A stretch of 64,000 bases of DNA, from assembly GCF_006345805.1 (NCBI RefSeq), contig NC_043003.1, forward strand, positions 100,812,001-100,876,000, written 5' to 3'. The notes beneath the pieces were generated by a model, which worked only from the letters and a program-made list of their open reading frames with translations, had not been told where the DNA came from and did no database searches. This DNA comes from Octopus sinensis (lineage: Eukaryota). A program made the position numbers and the translations under genes. Below, piece by piece: positions 1 through 55,118 of this stretch (within the stretch, counting starts at the first letter, position 1; the number at the start of each line of letters is the position of its first letter).

Positions 1-2220
1 TCTTTTGATGACCTTGTAGGGCCCGGAATATGGTGGTCGAAGTTGAGAGGGTATCCCATCATTCCTCACGAAGACATGAGTCCATGTGTTGATATCTTTT
101 GGGACACGTGAAACGACGTTCTGTTGTCTAGGGCCTGAGGGTGATACTTGCGACATGGATGTTCGTAATCGGTGCACATATTGTTGTGGGTCAGGGAAGT
201 TTTGTGAAACAGGTTCGATCATCTGCCCAGGTAAGGTGAGTGTTGTGCCATAAACGAGTTCGGCCGGAGTATATCCCAGTTCTTCCTTAATCGTGGATCG
301 AATTCCAAGGAGGATGAGAGGGAGATGTTCCAACCAGTGAGAACTGTCTGGAGCAGCTTTTATAGATGCCTTGAGTTGGCGGTGAAAGCGTTCCACCATG
401 CCATTTGCTGCAGGGTGGTAAGCTGTAGTGCGGGTGTGTTTACACCCGAGGAGACGAGTCAGCTCGGTGAAAAGGTGGGAATCGAACTGACGTCCTCTGT
501 CGGTGGTAATTGTTGCGGGTGTGCCAAAACGCGAAACCCATTGTGATATCAGCGTTTTAGCGACCGTTTCTGCTGATATATCAGATAGGGGCCAGGCTTC
601 GGGCCATCGCGAGAACCTATCTACGCAAGTTAGCAAATATGAATAGTTCTGCGAAGGTGGCAGGGGTCCAACGATATCAATGTGAACGTGCTGAAATCGT
701 GCATCGGGCTGCGAAAATGAACCGATTGGTGATTTTATGTGCCGGTGGATTTTCGATTTTTGGCACGCAACACAGCACTTGGTCCATTCTCTGATATCCT
801 TGTTGATACTGGTCCACACAAAACGGGTCGATATTAGCTTTTGAGTGGAGCGAATACCAGGATGTGACAGAGAATGTAGAGCGGAGAAAACTTCTCGACG
901 ATATTTCTGTGGTACATAAGGGCGTTGGTAACCAGTGGAAATATCACACCAAATATGGGCTGTGGATGATGGTAGTGGAACATGCTGAAATTTCAGAGAT
1001 GACGAATTCCGGAGCTTTAGAAGTTCTTCGTCATTCTCCTGGTCAGCTGCTATACGTGCCAGATCAATTGTAGACGTGGTGTGGATAGCATTGATCTGCG
1101 CACGTGAAAGTGCATCGGCTGCCACGTTGGTCGTCCCTTTGATGTGGCGTATATCCGTCGTGTACTGCGATATGAAATCGAGGTGGCGTATTTCTCTTGG
1201 CGAATGGCGATCCGGTTTGGTGTTAAATGCGTATACTAATGGCTTGTGGTCGGTATATATGGCAAAATTGGTACCTTCTAGCATATGACGGAAATGCTTA
1301 ACGGCCAGGTATGCCGCCAATAATTCCCGACTGAATGTGCTGTATTTGGTTTCCGCGGGTTTTAACCGCTTAGAAAAGAAAGACAACGGTTGCCATATAC
1401 CGTCAACAAGCTGTTGTAGCACACCTCCGATTCCGGAATCGGATGCATCAACGAGTAAACATCGTGGGGCGTCTGGTTTTGGATAAACCAACATGGTAGC
1501 GCTAGATAACGCTTTTTTCAGGGCAGCGAAAGAAACGAGTTGATCTTCGGTCAGAGCTATATCTGCGTTTTTGCAGGTTCGCTGACGTAGCAAATCCGTG
1601 AGCGGTTGCGCTATTTCAGCGAGGTGGGGCACGAACCGTCGATAGAAATTCGCTAGACCGAGATATTCCCTTAATTTGCGGAGAGATGTGGGTGGTGGAA
1701 AATCCACGATGGCCTTGACTTTCTCGGGAAGGGGACGAATTCCATTTTTATCGACTATATGGCCGAGAAAATGAAGGGAAGCAACTCCGAACAAACATTT
1801 AGTAGGGTTGATAACAATTCCGAATTTACGTAAACGTTCGAATAGCAGGTGAAGGTGTTGATTATGCTCTTCGTCCGAGTTACTGGCCACGAGTATGTCG
1901 TCTATGTAGGCATAGACGAAAGGCAAACCTCTAGTCACCATGTCGATAAACCTTTGGAATGTCTGTGCCGCGTTTCGTAAACCGAAAGGCATACGCAGGA
2001 ATTCAAACATTCCGAAAGGTGTAGTCACTGCTGTCTTTGAGATGTCTGCAGGTTCGACTGGGATTTGGTTGTATGCTCGCACCAGGTCGATTTTTGAAAA
2101 GATGCGAGCTCCATGCAGCGAGCTCGAAAAGTCCTGAAGAAAAGGCACCGGATAGGCATCACTGATAGTGCTTTTATTCAGTGATCGATAATCGCCGCAA
2201 ACCCGCCAATCGGTCGATGA
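1..2220 (-). CDS. pol: Pol RT-RNase H-integrase, open frame running off the window edge
   Basis: Manual translation gives [69 protein letters not shown], the HHCC finger, [17 protein letters not shown] and PPYSGPYKV. The ORF track reports no closed minus-strand ORF here, consistent with no stop before position 1. Confidence 0.88.
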
Positions 2221-2873
2221 TTTTTTTTGGGACGCAGTGTATCGGCGAGGACCAGTTGCTGCTGGAAACGCGGATGATTCCGAGGTCGAGCATGTGCTGG
2301 AATTCCCGCTTGACGGCCTGAAGACGATCAGGTGGTAACCTTCTGGGCCTTGCAGCAACAGGTGGACCGCTGGTTTTGATGTGGTGGGTAACGTCGTGCT
2401 TTATCGGCTGGTTATGAAAAACTGGCCGGGCGACATCTGGATAATCATTCAGGATGGAACTGTGACGAGTCGTTGTCGTAAGCATTACAGTTGGGCTGAC
2501 TGTGTCCATTCGAGCGGCTATACCGCGCACAGTAAGCTTGGTGGTGGTGTCGACAAGTCGTCTGTTCTTTATGTCTACCAGGAGACCGAAATGATGCAGG
2601 AAATCGGCTCCTAAATGTGCGGCGTAGTCCTATGTTTAATGTTAGGGACTGTTCACCGTAGGTTGGAATGGGTGAATGGTTGACTGCCTGAAGACAGACT
2701 GATGTCTCTTTTCTTTTTCCAGAAGTGTTGGAGACTGGGATGATGCTGACTTCCGCACCTGTGTCAACCAGGAAACGCGTGCCTGTTACACGATCGCAAA
2801 CGAAAAACAGGCGACTGTGTGGGTGCGAACCAGGAACTTCCGTCGCGTTCAATTCCTGGCTGTGCCGTTTCCC
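2221..2873 (-). pseudogene. pol: Pol N-terminus (aspartic protease to start of RT), -1 frame relative to gag, with two lesions
   Basis: Protease motif FLVDTGAEVSII. The frame breaks after LRRTF, where the expected W-V-F-I-I-A-D-type segment before LGADFLHHF is missing (near 2613). A second break lies in the 8-T run at 2221-2228. Confidence 0.85.
2811..2873 (-). promoter_or_regulatory. Predicted programmed -1 ribosomal frameshift signal (G GGA AAC plus pseudoknot)
   Basis: In-frame slippery heptamer at 2873-2867, 6-nt spacer, 10-bp stem 1 (2860-2851 with 2838-2829) and 5-bp stem 2 (GCGAC 2846-2842 with GUCGC 2815-2811). Confidence 0.8.
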
Positions 2874-5039: not shown

Positions 5040-6170
5040 ACCATTATAGGTATTAATACTCCAGTGAAATTAAGAAATCAACTTGTAAATAAATGAATCC
5101 ATCAGTGTACACACACATGCACAGTTGTATATCTATGTATGTATTTACATGCACATGTACCCATATGTGTCTACACACATAGGTACACCATGATCTATAC
5201 ACACACAGACAAGGAACAATTCACATGAAAAAAAAAATGAAATGAAATACTTATAGAAATAATTGCAAAAAATTTAAGTGTTTTCAACATCTTTCAATGA
5301 TGGCAGGGGAATCAAACGTACTGTAGTTCATTGTAGGATATAAATGATATGACCACTTGCTTATCGGGAAATTTGTAAGCTTGATTTTTTTTTTATTTAA
5401 AAAAAGTTTCACTATTATAGGCATAGAAGTGGCTGTGTAGTAAGTAGCTTGCTTACCAACCACATGGCTCCGGGTTCAGTCCCACTGCGTGGCATCTTGG
5501 GCAAGTGTCTTCTACTATAGCCTCGAGCCAACCAAAGCCGTGTGAGTGGATTTGGTAGACAGAAACTGAAAGAAGCCCATTGTATATATGTATATACATG
5601 TGTGTGTATATGTTTGTGTGTCTGTGTTTGTCCCCCCAACATTGCTTGGCAAAAGAAACTGATAGAATAAGTACTAGACTTACAAAGAATAGTCGATTTT
5701 TAGTTGATTTACTCGACTAAAAGTGGTACTCCAGCATGGCAACAGTCAAATGACCAAAACAAATAAAAGAATAACAGAATAGGTATTTATACTCCGGTGA
5801 AATTAATAAATTAACTTATAAATAAACAAAACCCTTGAATATATCACTGTACACACACACACACAAGAGTCACATATCCATGTATGTATTCATGCATGCA
5901 TGTATGTATGTATGTATGTACCCAAATGTGTCTACATGCATAGGTAGCCCATGATCTATATACACGCAGACAAGGGTAAATTCATATGAAAAAAGTGAGC
6001 AAAATGAAATACTTATAGAAAATATTGCAGAGTTTGAGAAGTGTTTCACCATTATAGGTATTTATACACTGGTGAAATTAAGAAATCAACTCGTAAATAA
6101 ACGAAGCCCTTGAATCCATCACTGTACACACACACAGTCACATATCTATGCATGTATTTATGTATATTTG
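5040..6170. repeat. Diverged local tandem repeat, about 270-bp unit, about 2.5 copies, split by a SINE
   Basis: The block aggtatt(t/a)atac(t/a)cYggtgaaattaa...tgaaatacttatagaaa recurs near 5048, 5781 and 6056. Confidence 0.65.
5419..5771 (+). mobile_element. tRNA-derived CORE-like SINE (Octopus OR-type)
   Basis: A/B-box-like head (gtggctgtgtagtaag...gggttcagtccc) and CORE-like atcttgggcaagtgtc. The same family recurs at 26790-27035 and 55795-56195. Confidence 0.65.
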
Positions 6171-11099: not shown

Positions 11100-11378
11100 C
11101 AACAGAACAGCTTGTTTGTGAAATTAATGTGCAAGTGGCTGAGCACTCCACAGACACATGTGCCCCTAATGTAGTTCTCAGGGAGATTCAGCGTGACACA
11201 GAGTGTGACAAGGCTGACCCTTTGAAATATAGGTACAACTTATTTTTGCCAGCTGAGTGAACCAGAGCAACATGAAATAAAGTGTCTTGCTCAAGGACAC
11301 AACGCGTTGCCAGGAATTGAACTCATAATCTTACAATTGTGAGTTGAATGCTCTAACCACTAAGCCATGCACCTTCAC
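11100..11378 (-). mobile_element. tRNA-derived SINE with a gtgtccttgagcaagacactt central domain
   Basis: Minus strand reads aggtgcatggcttagtggttagagc...gagttcaattcc...cgttgtgtccttgagcaagacacttt. A related copy lies at 17710-17940 (+). Confidence 0.7.
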
Positions 11379-17709: not shown

Positions 17710-17940
17710 TCAGCTCAAGATCATAATATCATAAGATTGATACATAGTGGCATGTTGTCTCCTTGAGCAAGACACTTTATTTCATGTTGTTCCAGTTCAT
17801 TCAGCTGACAAAATGAGTAGTATCTGTATTTCAAAAGGCCAACCTTGTCACATTCTGTATCATGCTGAATCTCCCTGAGAACTATGTTAAGGTTACACAT
17901 GTCTGTGGAGTGCTCAGCCATCTGCATGTTAATTTCATTG
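17710..17940 (+). mobile_element. tRNA-derived SINE (same family as 11100-11378)
   Basis: Shared ccttgagcaagacactttatttcatgttg and ctccctgagaacta...tgtctgtggagtgctcagcca blocks. Confidence 0.65.
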
Positions 17941-18079: not shown

Positions 18080-18168
18080 TTAACTCCATTGACCATGGTG
18101 GTGGTTTCTGGGAGTAGATCTGACATCAGCTGATAACATGGTAAACAAATAAAAGAAAGGAATCCAAC
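18080..18168 (-). CDS. PDE10A: PDE10A-like exon VGFLSFICLPCYQLMSDLLPETTTMVNGV(K)
   Basis: Acceptor gatttcag, donor GTAAGT, phases 0/2. Matches the PDE (Q)VGF..IC.PCY motif. Confidence 0.9.
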
Positions 18169-19239
18169 CTGAAATCAGATAGCATTTTAACATTTTGTTC
18201 TCATGTTTCAAAATATAATCTTAATAGTGCATCTGCAAGAGAAAATTCACAGCCTTTTTTCATCCAGAGAAACAACTTCATCTTACCCTTGTAAGTTTTT
18301 GACCCGAAAATTTTTAAATATTCAATTTTCATCAGAATTTTTCCATATAAATTTTACTAAATCTTTTTAGGATTTCAGAAGTCTTTGGGAATTTTTCCTG
18401 CTCTTCTTTCTTTCTTTTACTCCTCTTCCCTCTTTTACTCTCTTTCATTTTTCCATTAGTTCTTGCAGTTACAGGTGTCCATATGTATGTGTATATGTAT
18501 AGGTGTGTGAGAACATGTGTATACAAGTGGCTAGGTGTGTGTTGACAAGCGAGATAACTCTCTAGCCAAGTACTTCGTACCTTATGATTTACAATATATG
18601 GGCAGATGTATCAGTGGTTTTGAATCCAACATCAATGATTTTTCAACTTGTCCTGATGAAATTCTAAAAAAGGGCCCATAACTTTTGTTGTCTGGTGTTG
18701 GTGACATGTTTCCTAATAATTTTGTAGTGTTGATTTTAAAAATGAAATCAATCCATTTTGCTCTATCACATAGTTTTTCAATATCATTTAAAATAAATGC
18801 AACTACAAAAGTGAAAACAAAAGTCATGATTTAAATATCTCCAGTAAATAAAATGCAGCAAACTCGAGCAACTTCCACCATTTCCAATCCACTCAGTTTT
18901 AAATTTCTTGATGATGACAGAAATGTTCTTTTACAGTTAGATGTTAATAAATAATATATTTCTGTGGTCCTTGACATCACACGTCTCATATTTGTGGAAT
19001 TTGTCTGCACATGTGCCCTCATTGTGCTCAATTTAGTGACTATCACTGCAAACCAGGTGAGACATATTTTGTCAAACCTTTCAATATTTCTTACGAAAAA
19101 TTTTTTTGAATGCACTCTTAATATTTTTATTGTGAGGTCACATGGGTCAAATTCACTTTTTGTAAGCATGGTCAAAAGACTGTAGAAAGAACTCCATGGA
19201 ACTTTGCTATCACAAATCTGCATTTGTTTCCTTTTATAA

Positions 19240-20227
19240 CTGTTGACAGATCTGAAAATGCTTCTCCCAGGTGATGACTAGCTTGAATATATTTTGTATT
19301 CCAGAAATATGGCCAGTTGTTAGAGAAGAAAAGGTAAAAACAACCTCAATGTCTTGTGCTATATTTCTGGATGTTACCCTTTACCTAGGCAGCAAAACAA
19401 AATCACAGATTTTGTGAAAAAAGCTTACCTTACTTACTTTGACATGAAACTGTGTGATCAAGAGAAAGTCTGAGCACCCTGTATAGTGTGTAAAATGTGT
19501 TGAAACACTGAGACAGTAACTGTTTCAAATACTTAAGCAGAAGTTTCCAGCTTGAGAAAACTAAGATTTGTGTGTTTGACAGATCACAGATTAGGTGGCT
19601 ATTGCAGGACAAGCAGTTTTTAGTGACCATGTCTGGTGTTGCATAACGAGCATGGAATGCTTTTGCTGCAGTTGTGTCTTATTTCCTGGGAAACAGGAAA
19701 CCATGAAATTATTAAGAACTTGTGAAGACCCTGTTAACCAGTTTTCAAGCACTGGGCTGCGACATGAGTGCATTTCCTGCAAAGTGAAATGGACTACTTA
19801 CATGAAAATCATAGGGCAATAAGTGATGAGCAAGGAGAAAGATTCCACCAAGACATGAAGACCAGTGAAACATCAAGGTAGATGGGACACAAATATGATG
19901 GCTGACTACTGCCAGTCTTTGCAAAGAGACTGTTGTGATGCAAGTTATTCATGCAAAGTAACAAAGAGAAAGCCCACTCCTTGTATAGCTGAAACTCCAG
20001 TTCGACAGAAATATCTATCCTAAATGTTTGTGTTATTTTTTTATTTCAGTATTGCATTTAATGGCAAAATTGACATTTTTTAGTAAAAAAATTAATTCCT
20101 GTTTACCAAAAAATTTGACATGATAGAACATTTCTAAGGGTATTTCTGAACCCAGCACCATCAAATTTAGTAGGACTAATTTCAAAAAGCAAGACAACTA
20201 AAAGTTTTTTCGAAAATGTTCCCCAGT
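19240..20227 (+). mobile_element. Internally deleted CMC/Chapaev-3-like DNA transposon
   Basis: N-terminus MASC*RRKGKNNLNVLCYISG...ITDFVKKAYLTYF..KL.DQEKV.AP is fused near 19518 to the C-terminus CFKYLS...SDEQGERFHQDMK...QGRWDTNMMADYC. The 3' end is ...ttccccagt. The superfamily label is from memory of these motifs. Confidence 0.6.
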
Positions 20228-20256
20228 ATTAGCAATAAAATAATAAAAGCAGCTGA

Positions 20257-20319
20257 CCAACAACTATTCATGTATAATTCCTATCTGCCTTAACAAAGTT
20301 ATTTGCTTTCTCTATGAGA
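20257..20319 (+). repeat. Perfect 63-bp inverted repeat, left arm (partner 21555-21617)
   Basis: Base-by-base reverse complement of 21555-21617, 63/63. Confidence 0.95.
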
Positions 20320-20475
20320 CAAAAGAAAGATGATTGTGCTTATTCAGAGAGTAAGGTCTAGAAAAAAAAAAAAAAACTTGACATGATATAAGAAAATTGA
20401 CTGTAGTTTTGAAATCAGCATGCCAAATTTAGTCTAAATCAAGGGAAAAAGCAAGCTCAACAGAAATTATTTAAC

Positions 20476-20556
20476 CTGAGTTTCTGGTAGAATATTTCTT
20501 TTTTCTCGGTCCATCATAGGCATTGGTTCTGACCCATGAGCTTTTTCCTCATCTCC
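20476..20556 (-). CDS. PDE10A: PDE10A-like exon GDEEKAHGSEPMPMMDREKRNILPETQ
   Basis: Acceptor tttcttgtag, donor GTTAAA, 81 nt, phases 0/0. Contains the GD.E and PMMDR motifs and the invariant Gln. Confidence 0.92.
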
Positions 20557-21339
20557 CTACAAGAAACATGATTCATTTTATAAAGGTTGCACATTGATAA
20601 ATTGGTACATATTGATTACAAACATCAGCACAATTTCAATGGTGGATGCAATCAATTAAAATGCAAGTTTGTAAACTTTTAAACCATGACAACTTTTTAA
20701 GAGCAAATTTACACTCCCTGTCACTTCTCTTTTGTCCAGGAATTTGAGTTTACTCTTCTACTATAAGTGACAATTGAAATTAGTTTCTGTAAACATTATT
20801 CAGTCCAAATAACAATCACCAAAAATAGCCTTTAGTACAGGAATTTCAGTTGTAAACAGATATGAAGCTCAGTCTTCTGATTTAAAATAGTCAGCTAGCC
20901 TCCCAGACATGAATTAAATAACATTAAATTCACAAGTGTCAAATCTAAATCTTTAAATCCTGAATTTTAGAAAGAAAAATGTATAATTCATGGGGTGTAC
21001 ACAGAACAGTATGTATCCAAACAATAATGCATCTATCTATTTTTTCAGATATTTTGACAGATTTGAACATGAATGTCTGTAATTCTCAGTTATTGTAATA
21101 GAAAGTGCAAAGTTCTTTAAAAGCTTAGCCCTTTTGATACCAACCCATCTGAGACTGTCCCAGGTTCTAAAGTAGTCTAAATTACAATTTTCCATAAAAG
21201 TTTTATGCTAATTTGTTCCAAACCTAAGCTTGATAATACTTCATTATTTCAAAAATTAAGTGAAACAAAGGCAGGATATGTTGACCAAAATATGGTAACA
21301 AAAGGGTTTTCTAATTCTTATTCTGTCCTATAGGTAGAG

Positions 21340-21800
21340 AATAGAGTGTCATCTCTGTATAGGCCAAAAATTAGCATTTAAGTTATTATAGCAAGTATAT
21401 ACCAACAAGATTGGTAAACTGTGCAGAATCACCATGGTAATATAGAAGTTCTTGTGTTTATCCCTATGGGTCTAAAGTTTATTATTGAATTTAATTAGTC
21501 TTTTTAGAGGCTAGTATTATGGCATTCTCAATCAGATTGAGACAGGTGTGAGTTTCTCATAGAGAAAGCAAATAACTTTGTTAAGGCAGATAGGAATTAT
21601 ACATGAATAGTTGTTGGAAATATCCAATTGTAAAAATTTATCTTCCAAGTTCCCAAGTGCAGTTTTAGATTTAAACATAGTAATTGTTCTTTCTATAAGT
21701 TTTTAACTAATTTAGATGGGCAGATAAGCCTAACTGTAGGTTTGCACTCAAACTTAGGGTTTATACATGGTGCCCTAGGTGCATAGGATTCAGCCCTCTC
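21340..21800 (-). mobile_element. Highly decayed Penelope-like RT
   Basis: Read across frameshifts: KPTVRLICPS, KFLQLDI, FYITMG..SAQFTNLVGIYLL and GLYRDD, which match PLE RT motifs. Confidence 0.6.
21555..21617 (-). repeat. Perfect 63-bp inverted repeat, right arm
   Basis: Reverse complement of 20257-20319; sits inside the decayed PLE RT. Confidence 0.95.
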
Positions 21801-22811
21801 AGCTAGACAAAGTTTATAACAATATTGAGACTTATACAGTTGATTTAGTTCAACTTAGAGGTAGGCTTATGCTTATAGCAACTACATAGCTCTTTATAGA
21901 TCAAGTTATTATAAGAGTCAATATTTATATTGTATGAATTTCCAATTTTGTGAGCATACAAAAGGATCTTAGATGGATGCCTTAGTTTTCTTAAGAGGTT
22001 GAAACTTCTAACATTAACTCCTCCTTCCAGAATCAGCTAACAGCCTCCATAAGATTATTGGGATTTTCCTATATATCCAATTTGTAACTGAATTTTGTTT
22101 ATTTACTAGGTTACAACTAAATGGCTGTGGGTCTATCATTATGTAATGCACATTATATAATCGATATGACAATATTATTGCTTCCATCCATCTTATGAAG
22201 CATGTTATATTGAAACAACTGTAAGCTGTACAATATCAACAAATCCATTCCTCATTTGTATTATTTATTTATCTGTCTGACTTTTCTTTAAGTTTAATTT
22301 TAGTTCTTCTAGAGAGAGTTCAAGCCAGTTGCGACAAAACGTTTTTAGTTAAGAGAGTTCCTGGTGTTTGTAAATATGTGGTTGAGTTGGTATATTGGTT
22401 GAACTGTCGATGCATACACCCAAGTGTGTGCATCTATTCACGTAAAAATCACAGAAGGAGAAATTTTGGAATGTCTTACAAATCTTCAGTGTGCCACTAA
22501 TAGATTGGATTTGGAGAATCTGTGTTTCTTTTGCTCTTTTTGCATGAAATTGAGTATTTCTAGGTTTTTGTGCAAATTTGTAGTACATAAACTAATGCAC
22601 TTGTGATGGTAGGTACAAATGAGAATTCATAGTCAGAGTACAAGAGCTGCATTAATTTGCCCATGAACATTATCTTTTTCCTGGACTTTTGATTGTATAT
22701 TCACATCTACTTGGCAGCAGACTGCTACAACATGACATTTATTCCCTGTCCCATAGAACAATATCAGATTTGTTATGTTTGCACTGAATTGGTGATTTTT
22801 GTTTGTATGTA

Positions 22812-24427
22812 CAGTTGCAGCCAAAATGTTCAGAACGGCATTGTTTTCATCAGAAAAGTAGATATAATTTTTTATCAAAGTTGTTTTATATTCTATAATT
22901 TTCACAGACAATAAATACGATATTATTTGTTATTGCCTGAGATTTTGGTGTAATTTGAGAGGATAATACAAACGTTATGGATGATTTAGTGATTTACTGC
23001 AAAACCCATGGCAGCCAAAATGATCAGAACGGTTGCTTTTACTCCGTGTTTTAGTATATTTAACCGGCGAACTCTAATGTTTTGAATTTGTTTACGTGAC
23101 TGTTCGTTTACTAAACATTAGTAAGAATATTTGCAGTGTACTTTGTTAATATAATGCCACTTACTCCATTACCAATTCGTCAGCAGATTATTAAGCTTCG
23201 AAGGAAGGATAATTTAAGTATTGGATCTATTGCAAGTCAAAAAGTGTTGTACACGGTATTCTTAAGGTCTACGATGATTGTGGTTCGTGTGAAGCAAGAA
23301 TGTTTACAGGTAGGCGAAGAAAAACGACCAAGAGAGAAGATCGTGCTATGGTAAAGTTGGTTAAAAAGGACAGATTTAAAACTGCTGCTGCTGTTTCTCG
23401 GAAAATGAGCATTGTATTGAAGAAAACTTTATCTCGAAAAACTGTGTCTCGTCATTTAGTTGAACATGACCTACAAGCAAGAGCACCTGCAGTGAAGCCA
23501 CTGATCAGCTCCAAGAATAAAAATTGTCGTCTTACCTTTGCAACCGAACATGTGTTGTGGTCTCAAGAAAAATGGCAAACGGTGCATTTCAGTGATGAAT
23601 CTAAGTTTATGCTATTTGGCTCAGATGGAAAAAGGTACGTTCGTAGAAAAGTAGGTGAAAAATTGTTGCCTAAATGCCTTAAAACTAGTGTTAAATTCGG
23701 TGGAGGAAGTGTCATGGTTTGGGGAATGATATCTGGAGATGGTGTGGGCCCTTTGGTGCGATTACATGGAAAGTTAAATGCAGGAGTTTATAAACAACTT
23801 GTAAAAGATCATGTCTTGTCTGTGCTGAGAAATTCAACTAAGCGACCACCCATATTCATGCAAGGCAATGCCCCATGTCACAAGGCTAAGATGGTCATGA
23901 ACTTCCTCAAGGCTGAAAAGGTTATTGTAATGGATTGGCCAGCTCAAAGCCCAGATCTCAATCCTATTGAAAATGTGTGGAATATTCTAGGAGAACGTTC
24001 GAAAGCCAGAAATCCTAAAACAACTGAGCAAATATGGAATGCCCTTCAGGAAGAATGGAATAAGATCACCCAGCAAGAAAGTGAAAATTTAATTTCCTCA
24101 TGCAGTCGAAGATGTTAGAGTGTGATTGAAGCTAAAGGGCTTCACACTAAATATTAAATGATTCCAGTATTCTCTGTCATTTTTGATTATTTTGTTATTT
24201 TTTCAACCGTTCTGATCATTTTGGCCGCCATGGGTTTTGCAGTAAATCACTAAATCATCCATAACTTTTGTATTATCCTCTCAAATTACACCAAAATCTC
24301 AGACAATAACAATTAATATTGTATTTATTGTCTGTGAAAAGTATAGAATATAAAACAACTTTGATAAAAACTTATACCTACTTTTCTGACGAAAACAATG
24401 CCGTTCTGAACATTTTGGCCGCAACTG
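22812..24427 (+). mobile_element. Full-length Tc1-family DNA transposon, IR/DR type, 1616 bp
   Basis: 224-bp TIRs (22812-23035, 24204-24427) start CAGTTG. TA target duplications lie at 22810-22811 and 24428-24429. Each TIR carries two 22-bp direct repeats gcagccaaaatgWtcagaacgg. Confidence 0.95.
23154..24157 (+). pseudogene. Tc1 DD34E transposase, inactivated
   Basis: ATG at 23154 and a frameshift near 23233. FSDES gives D1; QGNAPCH has the second D changed to G; SPDLNPIE is at 34 spacing. An in-frame TAG at 24116-24118 precedes SVIEAKGLHTKY*. Confidence 0.92.
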
Positions 24428-24441
24428 TATGTATGTATGTA

Positions 24442-24639: not shown

Positions 24640-27160
24640 CCTATCATGCCCTCAGTACACTGCAGATTTTTCTGGCTAATAAATGTAAATTTATATCTTT
24701 GACTCCTCAGTATATCGCAGGTTTCTGCGGTTGATAGTGATTAATATTTTTTTAGATTTTACTTATTTCTATGCTAAAATAAGCATTTTCATGCCTAAAA
24801 ATTAATAAATTAATAAATAAATATACAGTACAGTACTGCACTGTATAATACATTAATTAAAATATATTAAAAGAAAATACATAGTGTACCATAGATGAGT
24901 AAACAAAGAATCACACATACTGTGTGGAGAACGAAACTCGGGAGGCAAGTGTGTGGTGTTGTTTTGCATTTGTGTGTAAAATTGTGAATTTATTTCAATC
25001 CCTGCGATGTTGCCCAAATGTTCTGCACCTTCTAAGGCTTCTGGCAGTGAACCCGAGCACCAGAGAAAGATGCTTGCTAAAGCAGAGAAGGTGAGACTCC
25101 TCAACATGGAAGGGAGAAGGTATGTGGATGTAGGCCACCATTATGGCATCAAAGAATCTACTGTTTGCTACATTAAGAAGGATGGAAAAAATATATGGGT
25201 GATGGCAAAAGGGATTTTTAACAAGACAGCGAAAAGGATGGTAACTTCCTGCAATAAGGCCATTGTAAAGATGGAGTCTGCATTAGCTCTTTGGCTCAGT
25301 GACTGCAGGAAGAACATTGCTCTGGATACTAACACCATCTGTGAGAAGGCCAGACAGCTGTACAGCAAGTTTACCAATGGCAGGGATGACAACTCAGATG
25401 ACCCTGAAACAGGACCATCTAAGGCATCACCCACCAAACCAACTGAACTTAATGCCAGCAAGGGCTGGTTTGATAAATTGCAAAGGAGGTTCAACCCTAA
25501 AAGTGTGTCCCAGCAAGGAGAAGCTGCCTCTGCTGACAAACCCACAGCTGAGGAGTATGTGAATGAAATGTTTAAGACTATCATTGAGGAAGGGAGATAT
25601 TTGCACGAACAAGTTTTCAATATGGATGAGACTGGTCTCTTTTGGAAATGGATGCCATCACAGACTTTTATTTTGAAGGAGGAGGCTAGAGCCCCTGAAT
25701 TTAAGGCATATAAAAATAGTGTCACAGTTATGTGTGGAATTGCTGTGGGTTTTATGATAAAGCCAGGGTTTATTTATAAGTCCAAAAACTCAAGGGACCT
25801 CAAAAACAGAAATAAGAACTTGCTCCAGTGCATTGGACGCACAACCAGAAGGCATCGATAATGAAACCACTGATATTGGATTGGTTTCACCAGTACTTCA
25901 TCCATGAAGTCAAGGTTTATTTCACTGAAAAGGACTGGAATTGAAAATGCTTCTCCTAATGGACAATGCTGGAGATCACGCGCTCGACTTGTTGTATGAG
26001 GGCATAAAAGTCAAATTCTTACTGCCGATCACTACATTACTGCTCCAGCACATGGATCAAGGCATTATTTGTGCTTTTAAGGTGCTCTATACTTGAAACT
26101 TCCTACAACACTTGATCAAGGCTATGGACTCAGATGATAACTTCTCACTGAAGGAGTACCGGCATGAGTATACCATTGTAACATGTCTCCAAAATATTCA
26201 GAAGGCCAAAAAGGAGATGAAGAATGAAACTTTAAATGCTAGCTGCAAGAAATTGTGGTCAGAAGTGGTCCACGACTATAAAGGATTCTCTCCTGACAAA
26301 TCCTCCACTCTGCAGAAGATAAGGCAGTGAAGATGGCAAAATTGTTAGGAGGAGATCGTTTCACTGATATGACTACCGAAGATGTTAATAATCTGATCAA
26401 GGCCCACTCAAATTCATTAATGAATGAAGATCTGAGAGAGATGAAGAAGTGAGCAAGTGAGAAGGAAGAAGAAGAACAAGAGGATCCAGGGAAAGAAGTC
26501 AGCCTGTCACTAGAATGCCACTCAACTCTAGCAAAAATGGCAGAAGAACTTCAGAGAATGGTAGAAGATTAAGACCTCCTGATGATTCGTGCATTGCAAT
26601 GCAATTGATGGAGCCATGGAAGTTTTTAAAAACTTCCTTGCACAGAAGAAAAGGTAACACAAGCAACTGCCCATCACTATGTTTCTCACCCACAGAAAAA
26701 TGAGAAGACACGGGTACTCCCAAGAGTGTGGGGAGAGTTCATAAAAGCTTAAATATTCTTTTATTCTTCTATTTGTTTCAGTCATTTGAGTCAAATCGAC
26801 TCCAGGACTTATTCTTTGTAAGCCTACAAAGAATAAGTAGGCTTTGTAAGCCTAATTTTATCGGTCTCTTTTGCTGAACCGCTACATTATGGGGACGTAA
26901 ACAGCCAGCATCAGTTGTCAAGCAATGGTGGGAGGACAAACACACATGTATATACAACAAGCTTCTTTCAGTTTCCATCTATCAAATCCACTCACAAGGC
27001 TTTGGTCGGCCTGAGGCAATAGTAGAAGACTATTATAGGTGCCAAATTATGAAAAAAAAATTTCTTAGATAAATAGTACGTTACTGTTTTTACTTTATGG
27101 ATTTTCACCTATTGAAGGGGTTTTTGGAACATAACACCTGCAATAGGCGAGGGATTACTG
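24640..27160 (+). mobile_element. Tigger/pogo DNA transposon, decayed (left end approximate)
   Basis: ORF 25007-25861 has the CENP-B-like HTH (ESTVCYIKK), ASKGWFDKLQRR and VFNMDETGLFWK. Further frames give MDNA.DH and QHMDQGII. The right TIR gcgagggattactg plus TA ends at 27160-27162. Confidence 0.85.
26790..27035 (-). mobile_element. CORE-like SINE inserted in Tigger
   Basis: Reverse complement of the family at 5419-5771. Confidence 0.65.
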
Positions 27161-27599: not shown

Positions 27600-28431
27600 T
27601 CAGGACATATTGAGACAGAAAGGTGAAATTAAATCTATCATTGGACCTAAGTGAATGTCCATGCTGGCTGCATCTGATCTCAAAGCTATTCCCCATAAGT
27701 TCTAGCCACAGTTTTACTTTATATATCAATGGTCAGTTCTGGGTGGTTCTAAAGTTGCAAGCTGGTAGTTGGAATGGGAACGGCTGGGTGTTTCTTAGAT
27801 GTGAGATATCAGAAGCTATCTCAACAATTATAGCTTGGTTTAATGCTGTTCTTGTTAAATAGTTTGCAATATTTATGTGTAAATGAGAAATGAGTGCTTA
27901 TGAGACAGGAAATTTTTAGTTATGTCGTAGGGTGGGTTGAAGCAAATTATTTTTTTTTTCCTGATTGTGTTCTTATGTGGAAGGGTGTTCATTATATACT
28001 GTTTCCTCATTAACTTCACTTCTGGTTAGTGTCATTGTAAGAAAAGTAAAATAATTGAAAATATCTCTGCTGAAAGATATGTTGGATATTCTCCTACATA
28101 TACCATCTACAAATTTCTCAATAAAAGCTGAAGGTCTCTGCAGGCCCATCCACTTGATAATTTCATTTAGGTCTTTGTTATTCCTCCACTTGCATTGGCT
28201 TTTCCCAGTGCCCGACGGCTTCCAGTCATGTGTTCTAAAGTGCAAAGAGTTGCTCCACACTGCTTGCAGGATAAGTTTACTTTGCCCCAGATTTTAAAGT
28301 TATTTGGGGTTGACAAGCAATGAGTCACAGCTAACATCAGGAAGGACAACTTCCCATGGATGGTGTTTGCTCAGGTACCTTTTCTCACTCTATCCAGTGT
28401 CCTTAGCAGGCAAGCCCTATGACTTTTGCAC
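27600..28431 (-). mobile_element. HERO/R2-type REL LINE fragment (zinc-knuckle region)
   Basis: PNNFKIWGKVNLSCKQCGATLCTLEH and KCQWRNNKDLNEI resemble the CCHC knuckle and RH(N/D) motif of REL LINEs. Confidence 0.55.
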
Positions 28432-28566
28432 TGTGATCTTACCCCTTGATCCTTGTATGTATATACATGTAAAAGTCACTGTGTAAAAGTCATAGGGCTT
28501 GTCTGCTAAGGACACTGGACAGAGTGAGAAAAGGCACTTGAGCAAACACTGTCCATGGGAAGTTGT
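28346..28566. repeat. Fold-back inverted duplication, 86-bp arms, 49-nt spacer
   Basis: 28346-28431 pairs with 28481-28566; about 7 mismatches by eye, all transitions. Confidence 0.9.
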
Positions 28567-31433: not shown

Positions 31434-31545
31434 CTGTGCATAGAATTCTTCAAAAACCACTTTAACTGTCTCTTTCTGAATATCCCATGGTTTAGCACTG
31501 GCACATAAATCGGCTCCTGTCATTGTTATAGATCGCAGCAGTTTT
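31434..31545 (-). CDS. PDE10A: PDE10A-like exon (R)KLLRSITMTGADLCASAKPWDIQKETVKVVFEEFYAQ
   Basis: Acceptor tattttcag, donor GTAATT, phases 2/0. The metal-binding D lies in MTGADL; AKPW and EF motifs are close to C. elegans PDE-5. Confidence 0.93.
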
Positions 31546-32415
31546 CTGAAAATATACAAATAGATGCATTGCCATTTTTGACCTAGCACTTAAAAATGTT
31601 AAAAATAGTGAAAATAAATATATCTATTTCCTATATTTGGATTTTAACTGTTTTTGATTTGAAAACAATTTTCATTTACTGGCTTGCTGTTATTAAATTA
31701 AAATGCCAAATGTTAAAGTTTTCAGTTTGCTAATATAGTGAGTTAAAGCTGATGTATTGATTAATCTTATTTTCACCCATTAAATGACTCACCCAGTTTC
31801 TATATTTCTAGAATTTAAATTTGTGCTTTTGCAGGAGAACTTGGGACTGTTTCTTTAAAAGTGACACTTGTTCACACATGCATGTGCAGGCACACACACT
31901 GCAATCTTCATATATTGTGTAATCTACATTAATGAAGATCACCTTAAAGTAATCTTTGACCAGGACCACTGTAAAACTGTGTTGGTCAAGGCTGGCTCTC
32001 TTATGAATCACAGGCATCGTCTATCTGACCAGCTTCTCCACCCTTTTCATCAACCTAGTTTTATTCATAGTGCTTTGGATGAAGAGGTGCCATTTTAGAA
32101 GACATTTGTTCAAAGTGCTGCGCCATGAGATTGAACTTGATGCCTCATGACTGTGCAGTGAACTTCTTAACCATTCCACTATGCTTGTACCTAGCTGTTA
32201 AGATGTACTTTTAGAGTCAAGTCAGTCAACCATACTCTCTTTTCCACAAACTTTCTGGTCATGTGCCAATGTTAGAGATCAATATATTACTAAAATGTCA
32301 AATATTTATTCAAAATAACTTGAAGAAAGCATAATATATTGTAATGAAGAAGATAAAATGATTCCCTAACTTTGGCATAGACATCATTTCTGACAACATA
32401 TCCATAGAAACTAAC

Positions 32416-35149: not shown

Positions 35150-37550
35150 TAAGATATAAGCGCACTGAACAATGTAGTGCATTTAATGTATGGATTGATG
35201 GAGAAGAAGAATTTCTGGGGTGATTGACCAAAGGAAGAACAGTGTTGTACTTGAAGGATGTAACAAAAGGAAATGCTACCAACAATTACCGGCCAATTTC
35301 GTGCCTTCCATTAATGAGGAAGTTACTGTCAGGAGAGACTGCAAAAGAAATTTACAAATTTCTTCATGATAATGACATTTCACCAATAGAACAACAGGGT
35401 TGTAGGAGGAGATGCAGAAGTACCAATCCTCAATTATTGATAGACAAAATAGTAATTCAAAATTGTAAGCAAAGGAGAACAAATCTGGGAATGGCCTGAA
35501 TTGATTACTGCAAAGCTTACAATATGATTTCACATTCATGGATTATTGAGTACTTTAGATATGTTTGGAATTGCAAGGAATGTAATGTTTTCTGAAGAGA
35601 AGTATGGTGGGTTGGAAAACTGAGTTGACATTGAATGGACAAAGCTAGAGCGCTCTGGGCATCAGGAGAGGGATTTTCCAAGGAGATAGCTTATTTTCAT
35701 CACTTTTTGTACTTTGTATGATCTCTCTGGCCTTGGTGCTGAGGAAAATGGACCTAGGATATCAGTTAAAGGGAAAAACTCAAAGGATTAACCATTTCCT
35801 CTTCATGAAAGATTTAAAGCTGTATGGAAAGGACAAGGTACAAGTGAATTCCTTGGTGAATACAGTCCACTGCTTTAAGAATTTGGACTCAAGAAGTGAA
35901 GTATAATGAGCCTGAAAAGAGGAAAAGTACAATCCCTGGCAGGGATAGAATTATCAAACAGAGAAGTGATGAAATAAATTGCAAAGGAAGGCTATAAGTA
36001 TTTTGGCACACTACATTTCAATGAAATCATAGAGAAGGAAATGAAAGAACAGTTAGGAAAGACTATTTCCAAAGACTAAGATTGGTGTTGCGCTCAAAAT
36101 TGACTGGATGGAATAAAATCCAAGTAGTAAATATATGGGCAATAGCATCACGTTAGTATAGAGCTGGAATCATAAACTGGCAAAACAAAGAACTGATGAG
36201 CATAGATGCAAAGACACAGAAATTATTGACAGTGCATGGAGTATTCTATTCCAAGAGTGACATTGACAGATTGTATTTGTCCAGAAGAAAGGGTGGGAGA
36301 GGTTTGATCAGTTGCCAGAATTGTGTTGAAGTAGAGAAAAAAACAGCTTAGGATGGTATGTAAAAAATGCTGTGGAACAATTGCTGAGACTTGTGAAATT
36401 TGGCATCATCAAAATTGAAAATTCTGTAATGAAAGAGAAACTGAAAGAAGAAAGGAACACATAAAATGAAATAGCATGGCAAAGAAAGAAAATATACAGT
36501 CAGTTTGCAAGAGATAAGAGCACCAGAACAGATACAGAAGACCAGTAGCTATGGATGGGAAGGAGTGACCTGAAGATAGAAACAGAAGCACTTACATGCA
36601 TAGCACAAGCTGGCAGAAACGTTAGCATGCCGGGTGAAATGCGTAGCTGTATTTCGTCTGCCACTACGTTCTGAGTTCAAATTCCGCCAAGGTCGACTTT
36701 GCCTTTCATCCTTTCGGGGTCGATTAAATAAGTAGCAGTTATGCACTGTGGTCGATATAATCGACTTGATCCATCTGTCTGTCCTTGTTTATCTCCTCTA
36801 TGTTTAGCCCCTTGTGGGTAGTAAAGAAATATATATGCATAGCACAAGAACAAGCATTGAGGATGAACTATGTGTAGTGCAGAATTAAGAACACGAGAGT
36901 GATCAAAGCAGAATGTGTGTTGAGAGGAGTGAAATAGTATGGCACACTGTTAGTGAGTACCTGAAATTGGCACAATGAGAATACAAAAGACATGACAATA
37001 TGTCAAGAATGATTCAATGGGTGCTCTGTGGAAATTATAGCCTAGAAAGATCAAAAACAATATGACCAAATCCCAGGAGTTACTGAGAATGAATATTACA
37101 AAATCCTGTGGAATGGAATGATTCAGTGTGACCACCAGATCAGACATCAAAAGCCTGACATTATTACAGTGAACAAAAAAGAAAAAAAACTTGCATGATA
37201 GTTGACATAGCATGTCCTGGTGACAACAGGATCAAAGGAAAAGAAGAAATAGTGAACAACTATGAGGAACTGAAGTGGGAAATACATAGGTTGTGGGCAT
37301 TAAAGTAAGTGGATATATAGTAATTGACACATTTGGGAGTATCAGCACCTGACAACCAACATGGCTCACAAGGAATTGGAATAAATGTAAAGACAGAACA
37401 CCTACAAAATCATCATTGCGTGGAACTGCAAGAGTTCTCCATAGGGTTCTTGAAGGATAATTAGCAAACAAGTGTTGCCTTAGTCTGCTGGCTGCAGGCA
37501 GCTGACACTTTCTATCATACCCAGCAAAATAAGCTGAGAATTTTCATCAA
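35150..37550 (+). mobile_element. R4/Dong-like LINE: RT, knuckle, REL endonuclease and 3' UTR, 5'-truncated
   Basis: [55 protein letters not shown] and PDI..V motifs; ends in (AAT)n. Confidence 0.88.
36610..36834 (+). mobile_element. SINE inserted into the Dong-like LINE with a 14-bp TSD
   Basis: Flanked by atgcatagcacaag at 36596-36609 and 36835-36848. Confidence 0.9.
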
Positions 37551-41800: not shown

Positions 41801-41849
41801 ATAATAATAATAATATCAAAATTAAAAGAAGAGTGCCATTGTTATCTAG

Positions 41850-41890
41850 TGAATGATATTTCGATATCTCATATGTCTTCAACAGGTTCA
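41850..41890 (-). ncRNA. Minimal hammerhead-like motif, decayed copy
   Basis: UGAAC CUGUUGA A GACAUAUGAGAUAUC GAAAU AUC AUUCA. Confidence 0.5.
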
Positions 41891-42047
41891 AAAAATAATT
41901 TTGTCAATCTACTTCATTTTGGTTAATATATAAAGGATTCAGGTAACTTCTCCAGAAGAGTCAAAATTTATATATATATCTTCTGGAGGAGTTACCTCAA
42001 TCCTTTATATATTAACCAAAATGAAATAGATTGACAAAATTATTTTT

Positions 42048-42088
42048 TGAACCTGTTGAAGCCACACGAGATGTTGAAATATCGTTCA
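42048..42088 (+). ncRNA. Minimal hammerhead-like motif, decayed copy
   Basis: UGAAC CUGUUGA A GCCACACGAGAUGUU GAAAU AUC GUUCA. Confidence 0.5.
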
Positions 42089-42249
42089 CTAGATGACAAT
42101 GGCACTTCCTTTCATTTTCACTCTATATCTTCTGGAGGAGTTACCTCAGTCCTTTATATATTAATAATTAATAATAATAAAACAATAACAAGAGTGCAAC
42201 TGATACTCTTTATTAAAGACTGATACTCTTTATTAAAATGAAATGAAAT

Positions 42250-51022: not shown

Positions 51023-51339
51023 ATATATATAATCACACACAATAGTTGTATTTATTAGCCCTATTTCAATAAATAATTGTTATAAATTTGTTGTGTTTTT
51101 TAACATCCTTTGCTTTACATTAAGAACACATCTTTTGCCGTATATTCTCACTCACAATTAAAAATAAATACGGTTGGCAAGAAAACATTCAGTAAAACTT
51201 TTGCAAAACTTTTGTACAAAGAAATGAAAGTGTTATCACAATGACTAAAAAAAAATAAAAGTTGCACTCCCAAAGACAACATAAGTCACATAAAAAGCTG
51301 AATAGAAACTGGAATGTGATGACAGTTATGAATACAAAC

Positions 51340-51495
51340 CTGCAAGATGGTAACGGTCTGATTAAAGTGGTGATGTTCCATTGTTGAAGTTGTATAAAGG
51401 GCTGCTAGTGGAGATTCAGACAATTTCATGAATTGATTAGTTTTACCACGATGATCAAGATCATGGCACAAGCAGGCAATGAATAGTGCAATACT
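51340..51495 (-). CDS. PDE10A: PDE10A-like exon [52 protein letters not shown]
   Basis: Acceptor ttgattctttgacag, donor GTTTGT, 156 nt, phases 0/0. Contains the class I PDEase signature HDLDHRG and E-HH. Confidence 0.95.
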
Positions 51496-51544
51496 CTGTC
51501 AAAGAATCAAAAATATTAAACTATTACACACATGCTTGCATGCA

Positions 51545-51634
<90 letters not shown>

Positions 51635-52821
51635 TTATGAAGTAGACAGAATTAAAAACTTAATAAAACAGGATATGAATGGTGTAACAGACAGGTAGAT
51701 ACAAGACAACAACTGAAGTGGTCAATGAATGAACAATAAACAACTCTAACTAAAACAAAACATGGTTTAGCAAAATAGGATGACATTATGCAAGTGACAA
51801 GTAATGACAGAATTATTACTGACCTGGTCAGGGAAAACAGTATACAGAGAAATATCAACAAAGCTGACCAATGAAAAAAAAAGAACAAATGAATTGGCAA
51901 ATAAAACAACACCAACTGCAGAAAAGGTTTCAATGTGAGGAATTTTCCAATGACAACAGCTATAGACATGTGCACACACATACATGATATTACTGGAAGT
52001 TGAAACCTCATAAGTCATTAGTCTAAACTTCTCATTTCCAAATTTGGGACGATAAATTTTTATCTGAAGTTCATAAAGGAGAAACTCAGAGACACCATTT
52101 CTGCAGTTTCAGCTTCCAATAAAATAAAATACAACACTCCATTTTCATTAGTCAGTACACTCTTCCCTTTCTTTCATATTTATTTTTTTATATCCATATT
52201 GATACACACACACACACACATCAATATTTATAATACACTACATGTCTTTTTATATATGCTTTTTTGGGGGAGTAATACATTAGTGTTTGAAGTTGTTGAA
52301 TTTGTTCTACTTTGTAAGATTTACTTTTTAAATCATTTGACATGACCTGGAGTCATTCTCTTTATTTTTGCATGTGTCAGCATTTCTACTTTTTTGCTGT
52401 AACAGCGACTCTGCTTAGGTGTTCCATTTGCTTTTCGTATTTAAAAGTTCATTCTGCATTCTTAATATTTAACTAATCTTTTCTTACATATAATAAATGC
52501 AATGTGTTTCACATCAGTCAGGTTAGTTGGGAGAAACTAAAACAACAGAGTGGGAGTGAGTGATGGTCAGAGATGCTAAATGCAGATGAACTGTAATTAG
52601 ATGTTTTGCTGCGTTTCATTTTAATCAAAGTGAATATATATATATATATATTCATGGGGAAGGCTAGTTTATGGGATTACTGTGGGTTTCCCATCCATAA
52701 AGGGTTTAATTTTTATGGCATATTATCAGACTCCAAAACCTGTTGGCCAAAGACCTAAGGTCTTAGACCAACAGGTTTTGGGATCTGACAATATTCCATA
52801 AAACTAAACCCTTTATGGATG

Positions 52822-55034
52822 GGAAACCCACAGTAATCCCATAAACCAGCCTTCCTCATGAAAATATAAACTGCTCTACATCTTAGAGTGTGCTTCTTCA
52901 CCGGATATATATATATACTAGCATTAAAGACCCGTCGTTGCCGGGTCATAGTGCTAGTGCATGTATATATGTGTATATATATATGTACATATTACATGTA
53001 CATCTATATATATACATCTACACATAAAATACAAAATACAAAGTTATATCTTGATATCGCTAGTGATAACAATACTCAAAATATATAACAGACTGCAATT
53101 GTTAGCCCGTCTCTTGTAATTTCGATTAATTGTATCTTGTCCTCCCTCTTGTATAGAAGTGTGGCTACAATCTAGCCTACCTCTACTTCGGGAAGGGGTG
53201 GGGGGCATTAAAAATTTTTTTCCAGGACGTCCTACGTCCCAGATATAAAGGTAAAAATAAAATATTTCCACTTTGCAAGTTCAAGTCAAGTACTCCCTTG
53301 CACGCTCCGTTGATTTGAACCTTGCTTCTATTGTGGCGAATTTACCACCTCTGATTAGATACCTTTCATAGTCACACCAAGACACTTTTCGAAGGTGCTT
53401 TCCTCCATGTGTTCAAATCTTCTTATTTCTCTAGATTGTATACTTTATAGACAATAATCTTTTCTTTAATTTAATTTTTTATTATCCATCTGGACTATTC
53501 CATTTCTGCACACTAATTTTATTTTTAATTTATTCCCATTCATGTGAAACCACTTCAAATCATTGATGCAATTTTATACCAATTGCTATTTGAATGGAAT
53601 TGGTTGTGTAGTTCTCAAGTTTTAGGGAAACACACAGACAGACAGACAGACACACATTCTCAGAGTGACCAGTCCGTCAGGCATCCATTTGACACCGCTG
53701 GTCACAGCACGCTGTCCCCTCCTCTCTGGATCACGCCTTTCTCATCCACGTGATCCCAATCGTCCTCCTGAAATCATAACTCCACCATCGTGGAGGCCTT
53801 CCGGGTGGTCGTTTCTGCTTGCGTGGGTACCACTCGACAACTGCGCAGGTCCACCGATTATCGGTGAGCCGGGCGACGTGTCCAGCCCATCTAAACTTGC
53901 TGCGTGTATACTCTGCGATGACATCTGTGGAAACCCACAGTAATCCATAAACCAGCCTTCCTCATGAAAATATAAACTGCTCTACATCTTAGAGTGTGCT
54001 TCTTCACCGGATATATATATATACTAGCATTAAAGACCCGTCGTTGCCGGGTCATAGTGCTAGTGCATGTATATATGTGTATATATATATGTACATATTA
54101 CATGTACATCTATATATATACATCTACACATAAAATACAAAATACAAAGTTATATCTTGATATCGCTAGTGATAACAATACTCAAAATATATAACAGACT
54201 GCAATTGTTAGCCCGTCTCTTGTAATTTCGATTAATTGTATCTTGTCCTCCCTCTTGTATAGAAGTGTGGCTACAATCTAGCCTACCTCTACTTCGGGAA
54301 GGGGTGGGGGGCATTAAAAATTTTTTTCCAGGACGTCCTACGTCCCAGATATAAAGGTAAAAATAAAATATTTCCACTTTGCAAGTTCAAGTCAAGTACT
54401 CCCTTGCACGCTCCGTTGATTTGAACCTTGCTTCTATTGTGGCGAATTTACCACCTCTGATTAGATACCTTTCATAGTCACACCAAGACACTTTTCGAAG
54501 GTGCTTTCCTCCATGTGTTCAAATCTTCTTATTTCTCTAGATTGTATACTTTATAGACAATAATCTTTTCTTTAATTTAATTTTTTATTATCCATCTGGA
54601 CTATTCCATTTCTGCACACTAATTTTATTTTTAATTTATTCCCATTCATGTGAAACCACTTCAAATCATTGATGCAATTTTATACCAATTGCTATTTGAA
54701 TGGAATTGGTTGTGTAGTTCTCAAGTTTTAGGGAAACACACAGACAGACAGACAGACACACATTCTCAGAGTGACCAGTCCGTCAGGCATCCATTTGACA
54801 CCGCTGGTCACAGCACGCTGTCCCCTCCTCTCTGGATCACGCCTTTCTCATCCACGTGATCCCAATCGTCCTCCTGAAATCATAACTCCACCATCGTGGA
54901 GGCCTTCCGGGTGGTCGTTTCTGCTTGCGTGGGTACCACTCGACAACTGCGCAGGTCCACCGATTATCGGTGAGCCGGGCGACGTGTCCAGCCCATCTAA
55001 ACTTGCTGCGTGTATACTCTGCGATGACATCTGT
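52822..55034. repeat. Near-identical 1106-bp tandem duplication
   Basis: ORF pairs 52888/53994, 53044/54150, 53544/54650 and 53665/54771 have identical translations at a fixed 1106-bp offset. Confidence 0.95.
53670..53925 (-). mobile_element. RTE LINE C-terminal fragment (second copy about 54776-55031)
   Basis: KFRWAGHVARLTDNRWT..WYPR..KRPPGRP is the typical RTE ORF2 end. Confidence 0.8.
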
Positions 55035-55074
55035 GGAAACCCACAGTAATCCCATAAACTAGCCTTCCCCATGA

Positions 55075-55118
<44 letters not shown>

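Follow-up and report, generated by a model that had tools for sequence, protein, structure and literature searches.

Complementary sequences in the two introns that flank an exon can promote skipping or back-splicing of this exon, a general principle stated in the initial annotation of the present locus and established in the literature (PMC4201285, PMC8052449). Repeats of 30-40 nt in the flanking introns suffice for back-splicing (Liang & Wilusz, PMC4201285), and little or no circularisation was seen in the ZKSCAN1 system when the exon was no longer than 400 nt (PMC4201285). Inclusion is lower for exons that long-range pairing loops out, the more so when the pairing is stabler, and A-to-I sites are enriched in long-range pre-mRNA pairings (PMC8052449). 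Most A-to-I editing in octopus affects hairpins of introns and 3'UTRs, and the overall circRNA level is low, which is consistent with repression by ADAR (PMC9699675).

Sequences of this kind can also be produced by mutation. The four-point template-switch model yields "inverted repeats flanked by dissimilar sequence", with events of at least 10 bp and templates located nearby (PMC5453318), and the creation of hairpins by template-switch mutation has been described (PMC8794818). Inverted insertions copied from a template have been recorded at breaks, and MMBIR-type insertions are known as well (PMC11724301, PMC8421209), the documented foldback insertions being mostly shorter than the segment reported here, about 5-34 bp (PMC11724301).

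Here we describe a 63-nt inverted repeat in a 64-kb stretch of the Octopus sinensis genome (called the window below, with positions counted from its first base). We consider it probable that the repeat is a single young local inverted duplication made by template switching, that it brackets the glutamine exon of a phosphodiesterase (PDE) gene only incidentally, and that it should form an editable intronic dsRNA.

The phosphodiesterase gene and the inverted repeat

A class I cyclic-nucleotide phosphodiesterase gene runs along the minus strand of the window. Its exon at 51289-51498 matched PF00233 (PDEase_I catalytic domain) in Pfam, and comparison of the stitched exons with solved structures gave PDE10A as the nearest (E=8e-31), followed by PDE5/6 and PDE2. 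By sequence the gene appears closest to PDE10A, and we describe it as a PDE10-like class I phosphodiesterase.

The exon bracketed by the repeat is located at 20476-20556 on the minus strand, has 81 nt in phase 0/0 and encodes GDEEKAHGSEPMPMMDREKRNILPETQ. Its acceptor is ...TTTCTTGTAG/ (AG), and its donor, CAG/GTTAAA, is weak, with mismatches to the GTRAGT consensus at +3, +5 and +6. The upstream PDE exon (31434-31546, minus strand, ..KLLRSITMTGADLCASAKPWDIQKETVKVVFEEFYAQ) ends in phase 0 with the donor CAG/GTAATT, and the downstream PDE exon (18080-18168, minus strand, VGFLSFICLPCYQLMSDLLPETTTMVNGV..) starts in phase 0. The exon length, the phase and the neighbours at 31434 and 18168 given in the initial annotation were all confirmed. 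As the flanking exons are all phase 0, skipping of the 81-nt exon would keep the reading frame (...EEFYAQ/VGFLSF...), also as proposed there.

Homologues were collinear over 31547-31434, 20556-20476 and 18171-18079, and the best relative retrieved with the PDE exon query was 64% identical. The 27 residues of the 81-nt exon were present in all retrieved homologues. Its last Q aligns with the Q before L-G-F in PDE10A structures (..ETQ/VGF vs ..QGQ LGF), which agrees with the earlier reading of this residue as the invariant PDE Gln; from PDE structural work we take it to be the glutamine that binds the substrate and is followed by the clamp Phe. The exon occurs only once in the 64-kb window, and a mutually exclusive exon system was ruled out on this ground. 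A degenerate pattern made from the exon was absent from metagenome contigs, and exact-protein look-ups with five ORFs of the window gave no matching record.

On re-check, the left arm at 20257-20319 (starting CCAACAACTATTCATG and ending CTCTATGAGA) was the exact reverse complement of the right arm at 21555-21617, with 63 of 63 bases matched and 1,235 nt between the two arms. In the minus-strand pre-mRNA the right arm is the 5', first-transcribed arm and the left arm is the 3', later-transcribed one. The exon is bracketed by them as first described, at measured distances of 998 nt between the right arm and the acceptor, within the 10,877-nt upstream intron, and of 156 nt between the donor and the left arm, within the 2,307-nt downstream intron.

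The likeness between the arms ends with the repeat. In the first 10 nt at the edges, 3/10 matched outside and 2/10 inside, and over 80 nt the flanks matched at 25/80 outward and 27/80 inward, which is the random level for the composition. All four ends of the inverted repeat are thus sharp. With relaxed settings (word 7, E<=10), self-BLAST revealed no third copy of the 63-mer in the 64-kb window. The all-against-all comparison of the window gave 25 inverted and 46 direct repeat pairs, and the 63-mer pair was the sole one at 100%, the others being 66-99.6% identical. We calculate that a perfect 63-nt inverted pair would be expected by chance in 64 kb about (6.4e4)^2/2 x 4^-63 times, roughly 1e-29, and chance origin of the pair is excluded.

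Other repeats are found in the window. They include a Tc1/mariner copy at 22810-24429 with 226-bp terminal repeats of 95.6% identity, a palindrome at 28346-28566 in the upstream intron, a pogo-type ORF at 25007 and a 1,154-bp tandem duplication of 99.6% identity; no Rfam family was detected across the 64-kb window. Relatives of the Tc1/mariner copy were present in ENA assembly ERZ21867824 and in Logan run SRR9969997, and 42 kb sampled from ERZ21867824 had nothing but the Tc1 element in common with the window. The segments 5507-5605 and 26940-27030 form a transposon-derived inverted pair (84% over 99 bp) that spans PDE exons. Because transposon-derived inverted pairs already span exons of the PDE gene, this class of feature is commonplace, and the 63-bp instance stands out only as perfect, close and unique.

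Predicted pairing and its possible effects on the exon

The PDE gene is presumably transcribed, and the arms are predicted to pair because both are transcribed in one minus-strand pre-mRNA. As RNA they would form a perfect 63-bp duplex of -105 kcal/mol with 32% G+C (68% A+U), in which 43 adenosines (19 + 24) would be included. When a 1,416-nt segment of the pre-mRNA was folded, the MFE structure and the centroid structure each contained the 63-bp helix, with the exon enclosed in the predicted 1,235-nt loop. Neither self-BLAST nor the all-against-all comparison revealed a competing complementary partner for either arm in either intron, and the other inverted pairs of the upstream intron (22810-23035/24204-24429; 28346-28566) pair mutually and leave the arm uninvolved. 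At the level of prediction, the stability, the two structures and the lack of a rival partner are in line with the pairing in pre-mRNA that the initial annotation had suggested, and an exon-looping duplex is plausible as a structural prediction.

The locus resembles the described back-splicing systems in having arms in both flanking introns, 63 nt at 100% identity and no competitor within the introns; its exon length does not, since 81 nt lies in the range of 400 nt or less that circularised poorly with ZKSCAN1. A stable predicted pairing encloses the exon in both structures, as for looped-out exons, and the long perfect intramolecular dsRNA predicted from arms in introns of the same gene is of the kind expected for an ADAR substrate. 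Given a real repeat and an expressed gene, intronic hyper-editing would be likely and a small drop in exon inclusion would be possible. An 81-nt circle would be unlikely, and the circRNA outcome raised at first is disfavoured by the exon length (PMC4201285) and by the low level of octopus circRNAs (PMC9699675).

A stronger effect, in which the duplex loops the exon out often enough to matter, would give an isoform without the 27 residues including the Gln, and/or an 81-nt circle, with modulation by ADAR. The arms are in both introns and longer than the minimum of ~30-40 nt (PMC4201285), lower inclusion of looped-out exons is scaled by stability (PMC8052449), and the -105 kcal/mol duplex dominates the predicted fold. 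The exon is short, its donor is weak and its skip is in frame; moreover, the 3' arm emerges 156 nt after this weak donor, so pairing could precede splicing. We nevertheless find such frequent skipping or circularisation unlikely. Besides the poor circularisation of short exons (PMC4201285) and the low circRNA level in octopus, consistent with repression by ADAR (PMC9699675), hyper-editing itself would weaken the duplex. The skipped product would be without the substrate-binding, catalytic Gln, so that frequent skipping should be deleterious and selected against. The presence of the 27 residues in all retrieved homologues, and the inverted pairs that already span exons of this gene, also speak against it.

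That the duplex works as a lineage-specific, editing-tunable splicing switch, where skipping gives a Gln-less PDE and melting by ADAR restores the active isoform, seems very improbable to us. In such a switch the Gln-less PDE10-like protein could be a catalytically dead dimer partner, and the ADAR hyper-editing could depend on tissue or temperature. If it were true, one template-switch mutation would have added a new regulatory layer on cyclic-nucleotide signalling. For the duplication by template switching that we favour, a neutral or mildly deleterious young variant without sign of selected function is the most likely status.

Age and origin of the repeat

For the mutational mechanism and the age, we infer that one 63-bp segment was copied once, recently and in inverted orientation, to a site ~1.3 kb off. 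The likely cause would be a polymerase template switch, which may have happened during replication or as a templated insertion in break repair. By accident of position, the copies would have ended up in the two introns that border the 81-nt exon, where the arms in the shared pre-mRNA would pair into a perfect 63-bp duplex around the exon loop. As for editing and any splicing effect, we infer that promiscuous A-to-I editing of the intronic duplex would be the expected outcome and that exon inclusion might also fall somewhat, some loss being possible because the exon is short and the donor weak.

The arms have the features expected of a template switch: each is an inverted copy of the other, the two lie near one another, and their ends are abrupt against otherwise unrelated flanks. 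A 63-bp copy taken from ~1.3 kb is at the long, distant end of the documented range, which counts against this mechanism. When the left arm was removed in silico, the junction ambiguity was 2 nt (GA) plus 1 nt (C), and it was 0 nt when the right arm was removed. The ambiguity at the left site is compatible with microhomology priming, yet it is at chance level and is no convincing microhomology. Of the two arms, the left one is weakly favoured as the copy.

With 0 differences at 63 sites the divergence is bounded only at K<4.8% (95%), or 1.1% by a median-type bound, so the word "recent" is loose. The inverted pair is no older than the youngest repeats of the window (the 99.6% tandem duplication and the 95.6% Tc1 ends). 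The initial annotation had reasoned from the lack of mismatches that the copy is recent or being homogenised; the direction of this argument was right, but its strength is limited by the 4.8% bound, and homogenisation poorly fits the abrupt ends.

An artefact of assembly, gap-filling or polishing, in which one arm is not in the DNA of the organism, is rather improbable in our view. A misplaced short segment would indeed be expected to show perfect identity and abrupt ends and to occur as a single isolated copy, and no independent sequence of the locus was found by protein look-ups or in metagenome and viral contigs. Against this, the window is without Ns, and the 1,154-bp tandem duplication at 99.6% was resolved, which suggests a good long-read assembly. 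Long-read artefacts are typically large palindromes, unlike a 63-bp insert 1.3 kb off.

It is also improbable that the arms are fragments of one dispersed repeat family, for instance a retroelement, which arrived through insertion and lie in opposite orientations by chance. The region is transposon-rich, with the Tc1/mariner copy, the pogo-type ORF and a coding remnant that ends at 20020, and RT-like strings can be read by eye near the right arm. Searches around the two arms gave no RT or transposase family, though, and no other copy was present in 64 kb at relaxed settings. Two independent insertions with identical 63-bp ends and zero divergence would be needed. A 26-mer from the arm had no match in metagenome contigs or viral contigs. 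Target-site duplications are absent outside the arms, where the flanks ...GCAGCTGA/ and /AAATATCC contain no direct repeat. A TIR DNA transposon or MITE covering 20257-21617 was rejected as well, on the missing target-site duplication, the conserved host exon inside, which lies in gene orientation, and the lack of further copies in the window.

Around the right arm, the initial annotation had placed a heavily decayed Penelope RT, and this was not borne out. Six-frame translations of 18500-23000 gave no RT signal against Pfam. The stitched frame-corrected minus-strand translation gave none against Pfam, in a search of 5.8 billion proteins or against PDB sequences, and no RT domain, GIY-YIG endonuclease or other protein family was detected around the right arm at E<=1-10 in Pfam. 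The Penelope-like remnant was therefore not supported, all these searches being negative.

On the minus strand at ~21200-21640, the strings LDISNNYSCIIP, GDSAQFTNLVGIYL, FGLYRDDTLF and STYPAFVSLNF-NNEVLSSLGL were noticed by eye, and the LDISNNYSCIIP string straddles the outer edge of the right arm. The strings resemble RT motifs and presumably follow their expected order, and we treat them as a lead only. Should the resemblance be genuine, the right arm would be the copy that served as source.

Near the left arm, a C-terminal coding remnant of a transposon-derived protein family (..HQGRWDTNMMADYCQSLQRD..) was identified at 19859-20020 on the plus strand. It had 10 matches at E<=1e-3 (best 1.2e-9) with relatives in animal genomes, which are unnamed or called "hypothetical protein", e.g. 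in Cordylochernes scorpioides. No Pfam family was found for the remnant, and no terminal inverted repeat for its element was found in the window. Of the Chapaev-like element first placed here, with its end ~30 bp from the arm, the transposon-derived coding sequence stands; the family name has no Pfam match behind it, the terminus was not located, and the coding remnant ends 236 bp before the left arm.

The left arm is inside the 161-bp spacer between two copies of an old ~103-bp direct repeat on the plus strand, at 20108-20209 and 20371-20472, which were detected by relaxed self-BLAST (68% identity, E=1e-8). The second copy abuts the exon donor and has an A15 run before it, and a partial third copy is located at 37175-37232. 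At 68% identity, these repeats are too diverged to come from the same event as the perfect left arm. This divergence, together with the partial third copy elsewhere, led us to reject them as target-site duplications of a retroposed insert.

An old inverted repeat whose arms are kept the same by gene conversion, or by selection to maintain pairing, is hardly credible: the perfect identity and the location around a functionally critical exon would suit it, but homology stops sharply at 63 bp between random flanks, whereas past the core of a conversion tract or an old duplication some decayed homology is normally left, so the abrupt loss at the arm ends does not fit long-term homogenisation, and 63 bp is a poor substrate for recurrent gene conversion.

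Comparison with known systems

Inverted repeats that span exons are common and occur elsewhere in this PDE gene, and on present evidence the feature is ordinary. The 63-bp pair is a further instance of a known feature type, in a notable position. If the repeat is real, it would be a clean natural case in which one mutational step led to a long perfect intramolecular dsRNA around an essential exon. It could then serve as a test case for the effect of 63-bp pairing with a 1.2-kb loop on exon definition, and for how ADAR handles such variants and how quickly they are purged in a heavily RNA-editing animal.

As a probable young duplication by template switching, the repeat is similar to documented template-switch and templated insertions (PMC5453318, PMC8794818, PMC11724301, PMC8421209) in being a perfect inverted copy with dissimilar flanks that could be made in one step. 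Most published events span tens of bases and draw on a template at a distance of tens to hundreds of bases, whereas here the copy is 63 bp and its template ~1.3 kb away.

Among exon-flanking complements, such as inverted Alu elements and 30-40-nt repeats (PMC4201285), the likeness is in the arms, which lie in both introns, are above the minimum length and have no competitor. The present locus differs from them in its exon of 81 nt and in its arms, which are a unique perfect duplicate and not members of a repeat family. With the PCCRs (PMC8052449) and the Drosophila examples (PMC2724269) it shares a stable predicted pairing that encloses a single exon, the skip being in frame here. PCCR structures are defined by conservation and compensatory change and come with measured inclusion differences, while the present one is young-looking and predicted from sequence; PCCRs loop out cassette exons, while a constitutive, catalytically essential exon is enclosed here. 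The likeness is also clear with intronic long dsRNA that serves as ADAR hyper-editing substrate, since a perfect 63-bp intramolecular duplex with 43 adenosines is predicted.

Inverted pairs across exons of the PDE gene

The 63-bp inverted repeat (left arm 20257-20319, right arm 21555-21617) is accompanied in the window by two other repeat-derived inverted pairs, 5507-5605 versus 26940-27030 and 11119-11303 versus 17754-17937, with identity of 84-85% and length of 99-185 bp. At least one of the two (5507-5605/26940-27030) encloses PDE exons, which shows that complementarity across exons is common in the PDE10-like gene.

Transposable elements, palindromes and other repeats in the window

The intron that holds the right arm also harbours a Tc1/mariner copy (22810-24429). 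Its 272-aa ORF carries HTH_Tnp_Tc3_2 and DDE_3, and relatives were found in a Logan contig of run SRR9969997 (96% DNA identity) and in a contig of ENA assembly ERZ21867824 (about 87% identity). The terminal inverted repeats of this copy are 226 bp long with 95.6% identity, and the element forms its own duplex within the intron, far longer than the pairing of the arms. Two imperfect palindromes within PDE introns, 28346-28566 (222 nt, 84%) and 41818-42118 (304 nt, 87.5%), are likely foldback-type or MITE-like repeats and would give intronic hairpins too. Another palindrome of 225 nt (52645-52868) adjoins a tandem duplication of 1,154 bp with 99.6% identity (52822-55081).

The 10.9-kb intron also contains ORF fragments of a pogo/Tc5-type transposase (25007-26330, plus strand), among them a 284-aa ORF with a match to HTH_Tnp_Tc5. 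An LTR retroelement contributes a long, unbroken pol-type reading frame (1-2400, minus strand) that extends past the window start; motifs of RT, RNase H and integrase were recognised in it by eye.

Exon donor and surroundings of the left arm

The essential exon of 81 nt has the donor CAG|GTTAAA (20470-20476, minus strand), whose positions +3, +5 and +6 do not match the consensus GTRAGT. It is a weak donor for a constitutive exon between introns of 10.9 kb and 2.3 kb. Old direct repeats of about 103 bp with 68% identity lie on either side of the left arm (20108-20209 and 20371-20472); the second copy is preceded by an A15 run and adjoins this donor. A partial third copy is present 17 kb away (37175-37232), and the unit is probably a short dispersed repeat.

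A decayed transposon-derived ORF (19859-20020, plus strand), with frameshifted upstream parts from about 19300, retains a conserved C-terminal tail (..GERFHQD.. / ..HQGRWDTNMMADYCQSLQRD..). No Pfam family was found for this ORF; its relatives are proteins without names from animal genomes.
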